Shown here: positions 9,303 through 39,940 of the stretch, in pieces
How the letters are laid out: each line of letters starts with the position of its first letter
Position numbering within the stretch: position 1 is the stretch's first letter
DNA from: Octopus bimaculoides
Taxonomy: Eukaryota
Length of the DNA: 52,866 nucleotides
NCBI RefSeq assembly: GCF_001194135.2
Contig: NC_068983.1
Coordinates: 144,041,995-144,094,860, forward strand
Direction of reading: 5' to 3'
Translations under genes and position numbers: made by a program
The notes under the pieces: generated by a model
What the model saw: the letters and a program-made list of their open reading frames with translations, nothing else
What the model was told of the DNA's origin: nothing
Database searches by the model: none

Positions 9303-9683
9303 CTATCGGAGACAAATAGGGAAAATGTGAAGGGTATAGATTAATGAAACGATGACATAGAGGACAGGAGAAAAGGAATAAATAAATGAAGAAAAAGTTG
9401 AAAAAATTAAAAAGAAGCATAAATGTTCACATCTCAACTTTCCGATAGTGTAGATGTTAGTCCATAAGTCCTTAAGAGCAATCCCGTGTAAATCCATGTA
9501 TGGTTATAGCCTTAATAGTGTAAAACAGTGCAAATATCCACAAATTTTATGCTTTCATTTCTTTATTCCTTTTCCCCTGTCCTCTATGTAATTTCATTAA
9601 CCTATACCCTTCATATTTTCCCTATTTGTCTCCTATGACGGAATATCCCATACTTTAGGATATCCCAGAAACAGCTGTAAGAC
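9303..9683. mobile_element. inverted pair of about 85-bp terminal-repeat arms, the right arm running into a degenerate hammerhead
   Basis: 9303-9390 is the near reverse complement of 9553-9638. 9628-9683 reads gtct-CCTATGA-CGGAATATCC-catacttta-GGATATCCCA-GAAAC-AGCT-GTA-agac. Confidence 0.7.
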
Positions 9684-10240
9684 TTTGAATTTTTCCAATA
9701 ATAATAACGTATATGATTTCAGATGTTGTTTGTCTTGCCTTAACGTTTGTTGTCCTCTTTAACAATTATATATATTAGGCACGTGCCGTCAGTAATTACT
9801 CAGGGTAGGCAGTTAGTAACCTTTATGTAGTAAAACACACAAAAATAAGCGAAACACGGGCTCGCGACTGAGTTTTAGGCAGATCTAGTTCTGCGTTTAT
9901 AACACTTAAAGAAAACGGTGTTGTAGAAATGTATGCAGCACGTGTACTACAGCAGTACTATCCATAGCTTAAATACTGAGATTGAAAAGCAGAGGCGAAT
10001 TATTCCTACCTAATCTGTTATTTTTCAGTTTTATTTCAAGATTTCTTGCCATTAGAGAAAGAGGCGGTTTTTAATCTAGAGCCAAGGTTCCTTCAGTGGA
10101 ATTTCAACACCAACAGGGCATTTTGCAAGTATGTATGATTAGTATTATGCAGATTAGTATTTTTGTTTTATGTATGTCTTCTCGTGCATATACTTGCATA
10201 TCTAGACGTACTCATATATACTGAGATGATAAACTTCTTA

Positions 10241-10469
10241 TTTCTTTATTGCCCACAAGGAGCTAAACATTGAGGGATCAAACAAGGACAGACAAAGGGA
10301 TTAAGTCGATTACATCGACCACAGTGCGTCACTGGTACTTAATTTATCGACCCCGAAAGGATGAAAGGCAAAGTCGACCTCGACGGAATTTGAACTCAGA
10401 ATGTAACAGCAGACGAAATACCGCTAAGCATTTCGCCCGGCGTGCTAACGTTTCTGCCAGCTCGCCGCC
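10241..10469 (-). mobile_element. tRNA-derived SINE family A, near full length
   Basis: Minus strand ggcggcgagctggcagaaacgttagcacgccgggcgaaatgcttagcgg...gagttcaaattccgtcgaggtcgactttgcctttcatcctttcggggtcgataaattaagtaccag. Confidence 0.92.
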
Positions 10470-10479
10470 TTTGATAAAC

Positions 10480-10785
10480 TTCTGGTAATGATGACAAACT
10501 TCTGGAAAGTTTTACAGACATTTACAGTTCCAGTGATGGTTTGGATTTGTAGTTTTCAAATCATCTTTTTCCTTTCTGGTTTTGAGAAGCCTCATTCCTC
10601 AGGATTGGTATTTAGGCTGTGTGTTACATATCCCAATGCCCCAATGATTACAGGTATAAACCTGAACTTGTAATCTGGATAGAGTAACTGCAGATTTCTC
10701 AATAGTTCAGCATAAGTAGTCTCGCTTTCATTGATTTCACTTGTCAGCTGATTTCCACAACTGTACACACTAATCTTTTTGTAAT
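10480..10785 (-). mobile_element. RLE-type non-LTR retrotransposon 3' fragment (R4/Dong-like)
   Basis: TYAELLRNLQLLYPDYKFRFIPVIIGALGYV...LQIQTITGTVNVCKTFQKF matches the KYxxL...IPVVIGALG C-terminal RLE region. Confidence 0.75.
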
Positions 10786-10794
10786 TACAAGTGT

Positions 10795-10915
10795 ATGTAT
10801 GTGTGTATGTATGTATGTATGTATGTATGTATGCATGTATGTATGTATGTATGTATGTATGTATGTATGTATGTATGTATGTATGTATGTATGCATGTAT
10901 ATATATATATGTATA
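10795..10915. repeat. (TATG)n microsatellite
   Basis: Direct reading. Confidence 0.95.
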
Positions 10916-10934
10916 CATCTATGCATGTATGTAT

Positions 10935-11160
10935 GCCTTCGTGTCTGTGTTTGACCTCCATTACTGCTTGACAAGTGGTGTCGGTTTGTTAACGTCCCTG
11001 TAACTTAGCGGTTCGACAAAGTGAACCCATAGAATATGTGTCAATAGTCCGTAGAATAGGTTTAAAAACATTAATGAGTGCTGGGGTCGATTCGTTCGAC
11101 TAAAGGTCTTCAAGGCGTTGCCCCAGCATAGCCGCAGTCTAATGACTGAAACAAATCAAA
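10935..11160 (+). mobile_element. SINE family B, 3' body and tail
   Basis: gtaacttagcggttcg...ggggtcgattcgttcgactaaagg...cagcatagccgcagtctaatgactgaaac, homologous to 3640-3715 and to 50840-51000 (minus). Confidence 0.75.
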
Positions 11161-12344
11161 TATATACATATACATACATCCCACCGCACACATGGTCAGA
11201 GTATTATATGTGTGCGTGTGCGCATGTGTGTATTTCCCTCTCGTCTCTCTCTCTCTCTTCCTATGACGTTGCATCTCTTCCACTCGCTGTGTCTATTAAT
11301 CTCTTAAAATGTTATCTCACTTTCATACACACACACATACTCACACACACATACCCACACATATATACATACATGCACGCAACACAAAAACGCATAAATT
11401 TACCCATATCACTTTCTGTCTTTATGTCTGTCTCTCTCTCTCTGAATGTGTCTTTTTCTTATAACTTGTTCTCTCTCCCTTCCTCTGTCTCTCTGCTTTA
11501 CAAACAATTATTACATATCTTTTTTGTCCTTATTTTCTCACTCTTTCATTTTATTTTCAATAGGTTTCGCATTACACACAGATACGCGTAGTCACAAGTA
11601 CATACAATAACAAACACATGCACAATTACAGATACACACAGAGAAACACACGCGCAAACACAAACAGACGTACACGCAGTCAAATACACGTCTCAATCAA
11701 TTTCTTTCTCTCTCATTCAAATGTCATTCTTTCGCTATTACCAACACGACTTTCACACTTTCTCATTGTTCCCCCCCTCCACTCACTTTCTAACAACGGA
11801 CACATGTATGTGTGAATAGTACAAGTGCCAACATAATTCAATTTATGTATAATCTAATTTTAAAGACTCTCTTGTCTTACATTATGTAAACACTTTATTT
11901 GAAATCCATTTTGCCAGCTTTATCAAATGGCTGCCTTAATTCCTCGATTCTAACAGCAATTTCACGCCATTTGTCAGCCGAATTAAAAATGCTCCATTGT
12001 CTGTCTTCCATAACACACAGAGCATTATAACACACCGAGAACCTACAACGGCTTAGTTTTCTTAAAATGCTAATCACAAAACTTAATCATTGATTGACTT
12101 TAGTATTACCAGAAGATAAAAGACTTTTATATCTTGAAATCTTTCCAAAGCCTGGAACGAAGGACTTGGCTGAAATCATACTGAATGTATCCAGCAAAAA
12201 CTATTCATTTATTTATACATTTATTTATCATTTATAATATAATCATAGCTACGTTTATATTGATTTGCGTCGATTTGAAATATGAGTTATTCGTAGTCTA
12301 TCAATCTATTACCTATATTGTTGCTGAGGTTGGTTCTTGTTGGT

Positions 12345-37974: not shown

Positions 37975-38067
37975 TGCACGCACGCACGCACACACACACA
38001 CACACACACACACACACACACACACACACACACACACACACACACACACACACACACACACACACAC
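37975..38067. repeat. (CA)n microsatellite
   Basis: Direct reading. Confidence 0.95.
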
Positions 38068-38311
38068 ACAAGCCACTTTACACACAAGAAATGAGAAATA
38101 AACATTAGTGACTTTCCTTTATATATTTGTGGATAAAGTATTATTTCATAGTTAGCTCTATCTAGCTAACTCTGACAACCTCTTTGTATCTTATACTTTC
38201 ATTCATTCATCCATCCATTCTTTATTTCTTTCTTTCTTTCTTTCTTTCTTTCTTTCTTTCTTTCTTTCTGTGTCAGTATAAATGTTTGTATGTGCGCACG
38301 TGTGCATGTGT

Positions 38312-38420
38312 AGGCGCGTGGCTTAATGGTTAGTGTATTGCACTCATAATCGTAAGATAAGATTATGGTTTCGATTCATAGATTGTGCGATACTCTGTTT
38401 TTTTTCTTTTGAAAAACACT
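38312..38420 (+). mobile_element. tRNA-derived SINE head, family C
   Basis: aggcgcgtggcttaatggttagtg (A-box-like) ... ggtttcgattc (B-box-like). Does not fold into a cloverleaf. Confidence 0.55.
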
Positions 38421-38479
38421 TATACATACACGCACACACATACGCATATATATATATATATACATATATATATATACAC

Positions 38480-38600
38480 GTTGTCAGTTGTTGATTTTCC
38501 GGGCCCGTATATTAATGGAAGTGGCCGTTGCAAAATTTGTATATCAGCCGAAAAGTTGTGTTAACAACGAACAAGATGAGGACAAATATCTGTCAAATTC
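38480..38600 (+). mobile_element. short PLE fragment homologous to 34040-34110 (minus), fused to a terminal-repeat-like piece
   Basis: gggcccgtatattaatggaagtggccgttgcaaaatttgt (GPYINGSGRCKIC) versus the reverse complement of 34050-34090. Confidence 0.6.
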
Positions 38601-39056
38601 ACACCAGTATCCCACAACGCTATCTATGTCACAATAAATTTTAATTCCAAAACAACACAATCGAATACTAATATAGATCATATTACTAGTTCTCCTCCAC
38701 TACCGACAGGCCGATCAGGTTTAACCTTACGAAAACAGAACACCATCTACTCTTGTAAGCATAGATTTTATTCAACTTTTATGCACTTTGATGATTCTGG
38801 ACAGATTTGAGAACCAGCTTTCACACCCATTGAAACTTATTCTAACTACTTAAACAACATTCATTTCCTCTCTCCTACTACCTATAGAACCATCAGTAAC
38901 TTTACTTTTACCATGTATTGTATCTCTTCTTCCTACTACTCTCTCTAAAACACCTCCATTTCCAGTCCTCATGCATATGGCTTTCTATAAGTTCACTCAG
39001 TTGTTAACTCTCATTATGACAACCCATTAAATGTGAATCTTTCTGGTACATTACTT

Positions 39057-39145
39057 TTCCCCGAAGAAGCAGGCGGTGTCCAATAATGGATGTAAATATC
39101 CTTTATTTGTCTGGACAACTGGACTCCCAGAAACGGCTGTCGGAC
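39057..39145 (+). ncRNA. hammerhead-like motif with long branched stem II (U4C core)
   Basis: tcc-CCGAAGA-(tgtcca/tggaca, aataa/ttatt and ggat/atcc helices)-GAAAC-GGCT-GTC-gga. Upstream sequence weakly resembles a GIY-YIG C-terminus. Confidence 0.5.
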
Positions 39146-39898
39146 TTTTAATACTCAAATCTTTTATGTTTTACCTTTTTTATGGACTCTATCTAATTCT
39201 ATAATATCGTTTTTATTCTGTAAATCGGTCTCTCTCTATCTCTCTCTCTCTCTCTCTCTCTCTCTCTCTCTNNNNNNNNNNNNNNNNNNNNNNNNNNNNN
39301 NNNNNNNNNNNNNNNNNNNNNNNNNNNNNNNNNNNNNNNNNNNNNNNNNNNNNNNNNNNNNNNNNNNNNNNNNNNNNNNNNNNNNNNNNNNNNNNNNNNN
39401 NNNNNNNNNNNNNNNNNNNNNNNNNNNNNNNNNNNNNNNNNNNNNNNNNNNNNNNNNNNNNNNNNNNNNNNNNNNNNNNNNNNNNNNNNNNNNNNNNNNN
39501 NNNNNNNNNNNNNNNNNNNNNNNNNNNNNNNNNNNNNNNNNNNNNNNNNNNNNNNNNNNNNNNNNNNNNNNNNNNNNNNNNNNNNNNNNNNNNNNNNNNN
39601 NNNNNNNNNNNNNNNNNNNNNNNNNNNNNNNNNNNNNNNNNNNNNNNNNNNNNNNNNNNNNNNNNNNNNNNNNNNNNNNNNNNNNNNNNNNNNNNNNNNN
39701 NNNNNNNNNNNNNNNNNNNNNNNNNNNNNNNNNNNNNNNNNNNNNNNNNNNNNNNNNNNNNNNNNNNNNNNNNNNNNNNNNNNNNNNNNNNNNNNNNNNN
39801 NNNNNNNNNNNNNNNNNNNNNNNNNNNNNNNNNNNNNNNNNNNNNNNNNNNNNNNNNNNNNNNNNNNNNNNNNNNNNNNNNNNNNNNNNNNNNNNNNN

Positions 39899-39940
39899 AT
39901 GAAGGGATATATAAAATAGATCGGAAACAGCTGTAAGACC
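39899..39940 (+). ncRNA. hammerhead-like motif truncated by an N gap (same family as 9628-9683)
   Basis: [gap]ATGA-AGGGAT...ATCG-GAAAC-AGCT-GTA-AGAC. Confidence 0.45.

Follow-up and report, generated by a model that had tools for sequence, protein, structure and literature searches.

Hammerhead-like motifs in an octopus window

The 52.9-kb stretch of Octopus bimaculoides DNA analyzed here (contig NC_068983.1; hereafter, the window) carries short motifs related to the hammerhead ribozyme, which are scattered among the remains of mobile elements. The window has a GC content near 0.35, 15 runs of N, and abundant TG/TA microsatellites, and it is densely filled with transposon debris, including copies of a tRNA-derived short interspersed element (SINE), mariner/Tc1 remnants, and fragments of Penelope-like elements (PLEs) (Table 1). 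An earlier reading of the letters alone (the sequence-only reading) had listed eleven sites as about ten type-I hammerheads with non-canonical catalytic cores. Our analysis partly confirmed this list: some 7-8 of the 11 sites, together with one new site, correspond to remnants of PLE-type minimal hammerheads, which can be grouped into two families, a pair linked to a PLE, and a few singletons. It is likely that the window holds PLE remnants and short PLE-derived repeats, each with a minimal type-I hammerhead, and that the cores of these motifs have three origins.

All strings quoted for the eleven sites are present in the window, at 9628-9683(+), 12740-12774(+), 14327-14353(+), 16030-16062(-), 22459-22495(-), 24364-24441(-), 26713-26749(+), 28757-28810(+), 33709-33775(-), 39061(+), and 39899-39939(+), as are the quoted stem III palindromes (ACGU, ACCGGU, ACAGCUGU, ACAUAUGU, and ACUC-C-GAGU). 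An acceptable minimal architecture was found at 22459, 28763, 16030, 12740, 26714, 24361, and 9628, several of them with defects, whereas 14320 has no stem I, 33712 fails as a hammerhead, 39057 is not a core, and 39899 consists of a 3′ half only. Most sites were borne out as minimal hammerheads of the PLE type whose stem III is palindromic, and remnants of PLE (16030) or RT-like (24361) coding sequence adjoin two of them. The supposed independence of the eleven sites did not hold, as they collapse to two multi-copy families plus singletons.

Table 1. Hammerhead-like motifs, repeat families, and mobile-element remnants in the window.
Feature	Positions	Strand	Evidence and remarks
F1 repeat, subfamily b	22409..22538	(-)	nhmmer E 8e-25, descriptor, alignment; hammerhead 22459-22495
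F1 repeat, subfamily a	12695..12801	(+)	Truncated by gap at 12802; hammerhead 12740-12774
F1 repeat, subfamily a	26662..26800	(+)	Self-BLAST, nhmmer, parse; hammerhead 26713-26749
F2 repeat	9565..9716	(+)	Alignment, nhmmer, parse; hammerhead-like motif 9628-9683
F2 inverted partial copy	9289..9379	(-)	Self-BLAST 89.5%, nhmmer E 2.8e-7; head-to-head with 9565 copy
F2 repeat, core and stem II region decayed/deleted	39041..39190	(+)	Alignment, nhmmer E 1e-36
F2 repeat, 3′ part only	39898..39989	(+)	Alignment, nhmmer; …AUGA-A-GGGAUAU…GAUC-G-GAAA-CAGCUGU-A-AGAC
Family 3 (F3) hammerhead (site 24361)	24364..24441	(-)	Core CUGAUGG (A9G); stem II 13 positions (12 pairs); GAAA; palindrome ACAUAUGU; C17; stem I weak (2 bp)
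RT-like ORF fragments, two frames	24771..25767	(-)	Contain GGLYSNDCLFYL (YxDD-like) and YHKPSTKLKYISFFSNHP
Minimal hammerhead, A3-U8 core	16030..16062	(-)	UGUC-AUGAAUA-GC GAAA GU-GAAA-CCGGU-C-GACA
PLE GIY-YIG endonuclease ORF remnant	16345..16713	(-)	…NLIYVITCSGCGHHYIEQT…; 66% identity to P0001 over 99% of length, E 2.5e-45
Best hammerhead in window, outside the interval of the sequence-only reading	48672..48743	(+)	Descriptor, Rfam RF00163, parse
Singleton hammerhead-like motif 28763	28757..28810	(+)	U4C core CCGAUGA; descriptor at 1 mismatch; parse
Near-perfect 52-nt palindrome	28727..28778	(+)	Self-BLAST 96% inverted; spans 28763 stem I 5′ strand, core, and stem II start
Partial motif 14320	14327..14353	(+)	Canonical CUGAUGA, 5-bp stem II (G10.1-C11.1), GAAA; no stem I; position 17 would be G
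Second PLE remnant	7794..8841	(-)	GIY-YIG-like LYIGQTEHRLADRFAEHLRDI (7794-7856) and RT C-terminal motif SHSYLNFSSSHPKHTK (8776-8823)
mariner/Tc1 transposase remnant	21735-22262	(-)	Pfam HTH_48 (Mos1 HTH), E 6.5e-10
mariner/Tc1 transposase remnant	43529-44983	(-)	By-eye recognition only
mariner/Tc1 transposase remnant	36043-36420	(+)	By-eye recognition only
tRNA-derived SINE copies	28597-28720, 5422-5507, 30570-30682, 49870-49979	(+)	
tRNA-derived SINE copies	10346-10469, 5698-5826, 5264-5390	(-)	

PLE-linked hammerheads at 16030 and 24361

The minimal hammerhead at 16030 follows the stop codon of the open reading frame (ORF) at 16345-16713(-) by 283 nt on the same strand; the 10.1-11.1 pair of this hammerhead is G-U. 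The ORF itself had no match in Pfam; its homolog P0001 passed the Pfam GIY-YIG family (PF01541; 28 bits versus a cutoff of 22.6) and carries a CxxC linker and an embedded zinc finger, typical of PLE endonucleases. On the contig of P0001 (L001), a homologous hammerhead motif is located 207 nt 3′ of the stop of the homologous ORF. The two motifs, UGUC-AUGAAUA-…-GAAACCGGUC-GACA at 16030 and CCC-UUGAAAA-…-GAAACCGGUC-GGG in L001, have identical GAAACCGGUCG and the same stem III, ACCGGU, whereas stem I has changed (UGUC/GACA versus CCC/GGG) and the core of the L001 relative is UUGAAAA (U3-A8). L001 is contig Ga0486131_04400 of JGI metagenome 3300045642, and its positions 784-1743 hold an octopus-like PLE endonuclease ORF, the 3′ hammerhead, and a SINE-like tail; it therefore represents cephalopod host DNA in that metagenome. 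Among viral contigs, the search for relatives of the PLE endonuclease returned only an 18-residue chance match.

Site 24361, the hammerhead of family 3 (F3), is situated ~330 nt 3′ of a reverse transcriptase (RT)-like ORF, and the entire region is conserved in O. bimaculoides. The F3 homolog in the O. bimaculoides sequence L018 (11629-11789; 77%) has the core CUGGUGA and the same GAAACAUAUGUC. Both copies retain GAAAC-AUAUGU-C with its palindrome, and stem II differs between the window and L018 by a compensatory change (A-U to G-C). The ORF at 24771-25767(-) is RT-like as read from its motifs, possibly a PLE RT, and shares 62% identity with the O. bimaculoides protein P0003 (chromosome CM046602.1, assembly GCA_001194135.2). 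Relatives of this ORF were also seen on the short contigs L019-L024 (Logan runs SRR11869384-SRR11869394); should these runs be RNA-seq, they would point to transcription of the element family. None of the Logan contigs with RT relatives extends as far as the hammerhead.

The repeat families F1 and F2

Sites 12740, 22459, and 26714 are copies of one repeat of ~130-170 nt (F1), with 71-75% identity as determined by self-BLAST, alignment, and nhmmer, and a fourth copy is found in O. bimaculoides L018 (8771-8898). The subfamily b motif at 22459-22495(-) parses as UCUUU-CUGUUGA-A-GAGC GUA GCUC-GAAA-CGU-C-AAAGA (A6U). In subfamily a, the 12740 motif has the core CCGAUGA (U4C) followed by an additional A; its stem II is GAGC/GCUC, and its stem III has degenerated to ACAU. 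The 26714 motif has the core CCGAAGA (U4C) and a broken 10.1-11.1 pair (G-A). The 12740 copy has (TA)n directly on its 5′ side and is interrupted by the gap 27 nt past the motif. An extra A after A9 is present in all four copies, and the G10.1-C11.1 pair, the C15.2-G16.2 pair, and stem III ACGU (22459, 26714, and L018) are each present in three of the four. Stem I pair 2.4/1.4 reads CG, CG, GC, and GU across the four copies, and 91% of the F1 helix cells are paired, compared with 18-43% when the partners are slid.

The second family (F2), a repeat of ~150 nt, unites sites 9628, 39057, and 39899 with the inverted partial copy at 9289-9379(-). Its motif at 9628-9683 parses as GUCU-CCUAUGA-C-GGAAUAUCC…GGAUAUCCC-A-GAAA-CAGCUGU-A-AGAC, with U4C, G5U, and an extra A before G12, and F2 is further marked by an extra C after A9 along with a G10.1-C11.1 pair. 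In the inverted copy, the core position (within 9300-9318) reads CCGAUAG, and the homology stops just past it. The copy at 39041-39190 keeps CCC-A-GAAA-CGGCUGU-C-GGAC in its 3′ half (39109-39145). The CCGAAGA at 39061, which had been taken for its core, was rejected, as it faces non-conserved sequence in the sister copy and lies ~55 nt upstream of the real F2 core position, which comes after TATTTGTCT. Site 39899 is confined to a 3′ half, its first base being the one that follows the gap 39272-39898. The palindrome ACAGCUGU forms stem III in both 9628 and 39899, and F1 and F2 have in common the stretch TTTGT[TC]TCCGATGA, in which a stem I change is compensated (U-A versus C-G). An additional A between C11.1 and G12 was observed in two otherwise unrelated hammerheads, F2 at 9668 (…CCC-A-GAAAC) and L001 at ~1531 (…AUGC-A-GAAAC); this insertion is missing from the published hammerhead descriptions compared.

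It is possible, yet doubtful, that F1 and F2 are independent non-autonomous hammerhead elements mobilized in trans, in the manner of animal non-LTR (long terminal repeat) retrozymes or Schistosoma-like SINE repeats, and not PLE terminal repeats. Their units are short (~130-170 nt) and have no coding capacity, F1 copies have no RT or endonuclease (EN) next to them and lie beside (TA)n, and the F2 copies at 39041-39190 and 39898-39989 are in direct (tandem) orientation, ~0.85 kb apart across an assembly gap of merely estimated length. They thereby resemble the short, non-coding type-I hammerhead repeats of non-LTR retrozymes and Schistosoma Sm-alpha, which are themselves thought to be derivatives of PLE terminal repeats mobilized in trans (PMC7229834; bioRxiv 10.64898/2026.07.22.740005), so that the distinction is perhaps semantic. 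Retrozymes, in contrast, form tandem arrays of 170-400 nt units with canonical, efficient type-I hammerheads that make loop-loop contacts, and they are marked by unit-length circular RNA, whereas F1 and F2 are dispersed, minimal, and degenerate; no true tandem array of either was found in the window, and the F2 pair across the gap is the one possible tandem pair. The F2 copy at 9289-9379 also lies directly upstream of the PLE remnant at 7794-8841, on the same strand. F1 and F2 are probably non-autonomous PLE-derived repeats.

Sites outside the families

The best hammerhead in the window (48672-48743) was not among the eleven sites. It has a 7-bp stem I, the core CUGACGG (A9G), a GCUA/UAGC stem II with a 31-nt insert, the GAAA box, U as H17, and the palindrome ACUCGAGU as stem III. 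In 48672 as in 24361, the G10.1-C11.1 pair occurs without an extra nucleotide after A9.

In the singleton 28763, stem I consists of 4 bp, a 2-nt bulge, and then 7 bp, the 3-bp stem II is closed by A-U without an extra nucleotide after A9, and stem III (ACUC-C-GAGU) pairs only in trans. The 52-nt palindrome overlapping this motif would compete with the hammerhead fold, and it is compatible with the short inverted-copy junctions typical of PLE insertions; Rfam returned only hairpin look-alikes for it. A (TA)n run (28836-28855) follows the motif. The SINE copy at 28597, which has an internal deletion, borders both the palindrome and the motif. A SINE origin of the motif was ruled out, as no other SINE copy carries it.

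The partial motif at 14327 is either a relic or a chance resemblance. The candidate at 33709..33775(-) was rejected. Although CUGAAGA and a flanking helix of 8 bp are present, the GAAA box is missing and the helix is shifted out of register by 5 nt; no descriptor setting recovered the site. We also observed a repeat in inverted orientation (14644-14769 and 28893-29019; 68.5% identity), its two copies being found no more than a few hundred bases away from the hammerhead-like sites 14327 and 28763, respectively.

Descriptor search, Rfam, and chance resemblance

We searched with a type-I descriptor that allowed up to k mismatches to CUGANGA in the core and one optional nucleotide following A9. 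It demanded the GAAA box, H17, and minimum helix lengths of 4 bp for stem I, 3 bp for stem II, and 2 bp for stem III, the last including A15.1-U16.1. No match was obtained in the whole window at zero core mismatches. With at most one mismatch, 4-5 loci were found, compared with 0.7-1.3 in dinucleotide shuffles and 0.9-1.5 for scrambled-core decoys on the real sequence, ~2% of the decoys equaling the real count. With at most two mismatches, 15-21 loci, mostly with weak AT helices, were found versus 5-10 in shuffles and 7-12 with decoys. The F1 pattern occurred three times in the window against an expectation of 0.04. The window thus holds a modest excess over controls; among the sites listed by the sequence-only reading, only 22459(-) and 28763(+) passed, along with the unlisted 48672-48743(+).

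Every accepted site carries GAAA, A15.1-U16.1, and H17, and each departs from the canonical core (C3 U4 G5 A6 N7 G8 A9 … G12 A13 A14) by at least one change within positions 3-9: A9G in 48672 and 24361, U4C in 12740, 26714, and 28763, A6U in 22459, C3A with G8U (paired) in 16030, and U4C with G5U in 9628. No site in the window combines a canonical core with fully intact stems, and no hammerhead motif crosses an N gap; of the observations made, the tandem spacing of the two F2 copies alone depends on continuity across a gap. Rfam gave no hammerhead match in the whole window at the gathering score, and no site reaches the curated threshold of Hammerhead_1 (RF00163; clan CL00010). In permissive mode, Hammerhead_1 was matched only at 48673-48742(+) (28.7 bits versus a gathering score of 34; E 1.2e-5). 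The 48672 site aligns end to end with the model, including stems I-III and the CUGANGA and GAAA boxes, and scores below the threshold because of A9G and the long stem II insert. RNAcofold of monomers and dimers showed dimers pairing through the palindromic stem III, although minimum-free-energy folds are not diagnostic for motifs this short.

Searches for further copies were negative. The family profiles (nhmmer) found no additional copies in 74 kb of octopus DNA. The core-free F1 pattern GAGCNNNGCTYGAAACRTCAAA matched once in viral contigs and 14 times in JGI metagenomes, all by chance and without the F1 flank. In the frame of a spurious ORF within F1, C4 corresponds to Pro and U4 to Leu; a profile search via such ORFs among 1.84 billion representatives gave four weak matches with a low-complexity look.

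A reading of most or all sites as accidental matches within AT-rich, hairpin-rich repeats, picked out by a degenerate descriptor that finds its own target, is very improbable. Such a view would account for the lack of canonical matches and of Rfam matches at the gathering score, for the sizeable background of relaxed searches (5-12 loci at two mismatches), and for 33712 and 14320. A half-descriptor (stem II plus GAAA) likewise returned 2-3 matches for each single-substitution core variant, a background level showing neither discrimination nor enrichment. The true descriptor, however, outperforms 97-98% of the decoys with scrambled cores when applied to the same sequence, homologous motifs recur at equal positions 3′ of homologous ORFs on independent contigs, and both stem I and stem II show compensatory changes. 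Two features that were not searched for, the additional nucleotide following A9 and the palindrome in stem III, are also present, and 48672 attains its Rfam score. Chance is therefore largely refuted for 16030, 24361, F1, and 48672.

Several observations nevertheless weigh against reading the sites as PLE-derived hammerheads. Hammerhead-like sites exceed chance about threefold, a real but modest excess that is supplied in part by repeated copies of one family. The Rfam hammerhead models miss the five leading sites of the sequence-only reading even at E<=10 (28763, 24361, 22459, and 16030 tested). With 2-4 copies per family, the covariation carries no statistical weight, and 74 of 500 shuffles match the value observed for F1. 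The F1 hammerhead segment has a higher pairwise identity than the rest of the repeat (76% versus 60%; p ~4e-5), which is suggestive of constraint, but this contrast is drawn from non-independent pairs and poorly alignable T-rich flanks. Neither F1 nor F2 could be linked to an autonomous PLE. The RT or PLE identity of 24771-25767(-) was not confirmed by Pfam, by a PDB sequence search, or by BLASTP to the other PLE fragment; its profile search returned four close relatives only, and its AlphaFold model had a predicted local distance difference test (pLDDT) score of 38.

Origin of the non-canonical cores

Comparison among copies suggests that the non-canonical cores are a mixture of three origins. 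The first is private decay. The F3 ancestor carried the canonical CUGAUGA, from which A9G in the window and A6G in O. bimaculoides departed separately; CUGAUGG is decay private to one copy, given that this element reads CUGGUGA in O. bimaculoides. The sequence-only reading had named a canonical family core, with the variants being decay of single copies, as the outcome that would refute it, and this is what the F3 comparison shows for CUGAUGG.

The second origin is a compensated swap. A3-U8 in 16030 faces U3-A8 in L001, and the 3-8 pair has therefore been kept. C3-G8 is a known base pair for which natural U3-A8 covariation has been described (PMC3088659; PMC4209133), and the literature searched held no report of the A3-U8 version. 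The swap is a small extension of a known principle.

The third origin is inheritance from the master copies of subfamilies, to which U4C in F1a, F2, and 28763 and A6U in F1b are assigned. Both F1a copies (12740 and 26714) have the common core CCGAWGA and the F1b copies (22459 and L018) have CUGUKGA. With CCUAUGA in one F2 arm and CCGAUAG in the other, the inserted F2 copy was most simply CCGAUGA. U4C (F1a and both F2 arms) and A6U (F1b) are common to copies and hence inherited, not private decay. Inheritance of a core variant does not prove catalytic function, because A6U is inherited in the same way and substitutions at A6 result in low activity (PMC3088659). The CUGUUGA core listed by the sequence-only reading thus stood as an inherited variant (window and L018) but not as one likely to be efficient.

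We consider it rather unlikely that U4C (CCGANGA) is the ancestral, functional core of several PLE lineages and that the genome holds many cleavage-competent non-canonical hammerheads. Several lines of evidence are consistent with this proposal. C4 occurs in both F1a copies, in both F2 arms, and in the unrelated-looking 28763, amounting to 3 of ~7 hammerhead lineages, and C4-G5 forms a CpG, a dinucleotide that is mildly depleted in this genome (observed/expected 0.76), so that a surviving C4 is unlikely to reflect repeated decay. F1 and F2 share a stretch with a compensated stem I, the F1 hammerhead is conserved above its flanks, a natural viroid hammerhead with U4C retains enough activity for infectivity (PMC3088659), and C4 families would have escaped the published fixed-core PLE searches (PMC4209133). 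However, the examples shrink on closer comparison: U4C in at least three unrelated contexts, as initially claimed, was a miscount, since 12740 and 26714 belong to the same family and the CCGAAGA of 39057 is no core, and both F2 arms probably derive from a single insertion. Parsimony does not discriminate between U and C at position 4 of the F1 ancestor (CUGAUGA requires one change on each branch and CCGAUGA two on one branch); CpG depletion favors C to U as the easier direction at C4-G5 without deciding this ancestor. In addition, activity in vitro is considerably lower with U4C (PMC3088659), PLE clades lacking hammerheads altogether also proliferate well (Craig et al. 2021, PMC8557442), every C4 copy in the window has a further defect, and the count per core variant gave no enrichment signal. 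What remains of the claim is that U4C is common to copies and inherited; its ancestral status in F1 is tied, and its activity has no support. That C4 master copies cleaved could be inferred at best.

We regard as improbable a broader scenario in which cephalopod PLEs or their non-autonomous derivatives have long propagated with a selected C4 (CCGANGA) core, with stems I-III covarying and A3-U8 alongside. If true, U4C would be a lineage-wide, biologically sufficient natural core variant overlooked by core-anchored searches.

Other features of the window

The second PLE remnant (7794-8841) had no Pfam match and was identified by eye from motifs in its translations, its GIY-YIG-like and RT parts being split by the gap 8119-8594. 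The tRNA-derived SINE is represented by at least seven copies in the window, in which segments resembling an A-box and a B-box and a conserved tail (GGGGTCGAT…GTAATCGAC) can be recognized. Three ORF fragments (10595-10918(-), 16748-16969(-), and 32090-32464(-)) share the motif …KYxxLxxExxxxWxxxxxxIPVVIGALG… and resemble the C-terminal part of a single family of retroelement proteins; none had a Pfam match. The ORF at 1844-2371(+) (176 aa) matched Pfam RdRP_2 weakly (E 0.0015; 17.9 bits versus a cutoff of 27), which is probably spurious. Dozens of sub-threshold miRNA matches in the permissive Rfam mode (mir-297, mir-466, and mir-3149; e.g., 51691-51761, 10859-10929, 43182-43254, and 26985-27084) are simple-repeat artifacts, because TG/TA microsatellites produce them.

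Relation to PLE hammerheads and significance

The minimal hammerheads of PLEs described by Cervera & De la Pena 2014 (PMC4209133) have features that came out of those authors' searches without having been required there: an additional, unpaired nucleotide separating A9 from 10.1, conservation of the G10.1-C11.1 pair, a palindromic 15.2-16.2, a long helix II, a short helix I, compensatory families, a terminal-repeat location, and frequent solo copies and opposite-strand pairs. The window sites resemble them in their type-I topology, in a very short palindromic stem III that requires a partner copy, in long helix II and short helix I, in a position 3′ of a GIY-YIG or RT-like ORF at two sites, and in their many scattered solo copies, opposite-strand pairs, and high heterogeneity within families. 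Palindromes, through which stem III would form only between two copies, were found in all accepted sites but 12740. The extra nucleotide after A9 and the G10.1-C11.1 pair are both present in F1 and F2 but not in 28763, and F1 displays most of the emergent features of PLE minimal hammerheads. Adjacent coding sequence consists of the PLE EN remnant at 16030 and the RT-like ORF at 24361, with no PLE ORF adjoining F1, 28763, or 48672, and no complete PLE with two pseudo-LTRs (pLTRs) was found in the window. The surroundings of the motifs are similar to PLE insertion habits (PMC8557442), as seen in (TA)n beside F1 and 28763, the 52-nt palindrome, the F2 head-to-head pair, and the F2 tandem pair.

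According to the literature model, tandem PLE copies would be transcribed, and two hammerheads would then pair through their palindromic stem III to yield an active dimer that could cleave the transcript into unit-length pieces. The copies in the window are old and best taken as relics: identity within families is only 70-80%, and in no copy does a canonical core coincide with intact stems.

The motifs differ from the described PLE hammerheads in their octopus host (cephalopod PLE hammerheads were not described in the literature searched), in the absence of a canonical core with intact stems, in C4 in two families and a singleton, in A3-U8 instead of the reported U3-A8 in one lineage, and in the extra A between 11.1 and G12 in two lineages. 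The 3-8 covariation, U4C, and a two-base-pair stem II are shared with the natural core variants of Perreault et al. 2011 (PMC3088659); those were assayed in otherwise intact ribozymes, whereas the window copies are otherwise damaged and known from sequence alone.

The class itself is known, PLE minimal hammerheads numbering from thousands to ~10^5 copies in animal genomes. The suggestion that this genome may hold very many latent cleavage sites, put forward in the sequence-only reading, was thus already established for metazoan PLE hammerheads. These minimal hammerheads of metazoan PLEs were reportedly also the subject of Lunse, Weinberg & Breaker 2017. With PLE hammerheads, their dimeric action, and their huge copy numbers in animals known since 2014-2017, the main content of our findings is a new host. 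There is also a methodological residue: existing catalogs fixed the catalytic boxes, a bias stated for the published PLE searches (PMC4209133), whereas the window holds two families and a singleton with C4 and one lineage in which A3-U8 stands against U3-A8. If a C4 consensus proved true genome-wide, the natural core sequence space of the hammerhead would be wider than assumed, and core-anchored searches would undercount these ribozymes; otherwise, the window would illustrate the decay of PLE hammerheads.

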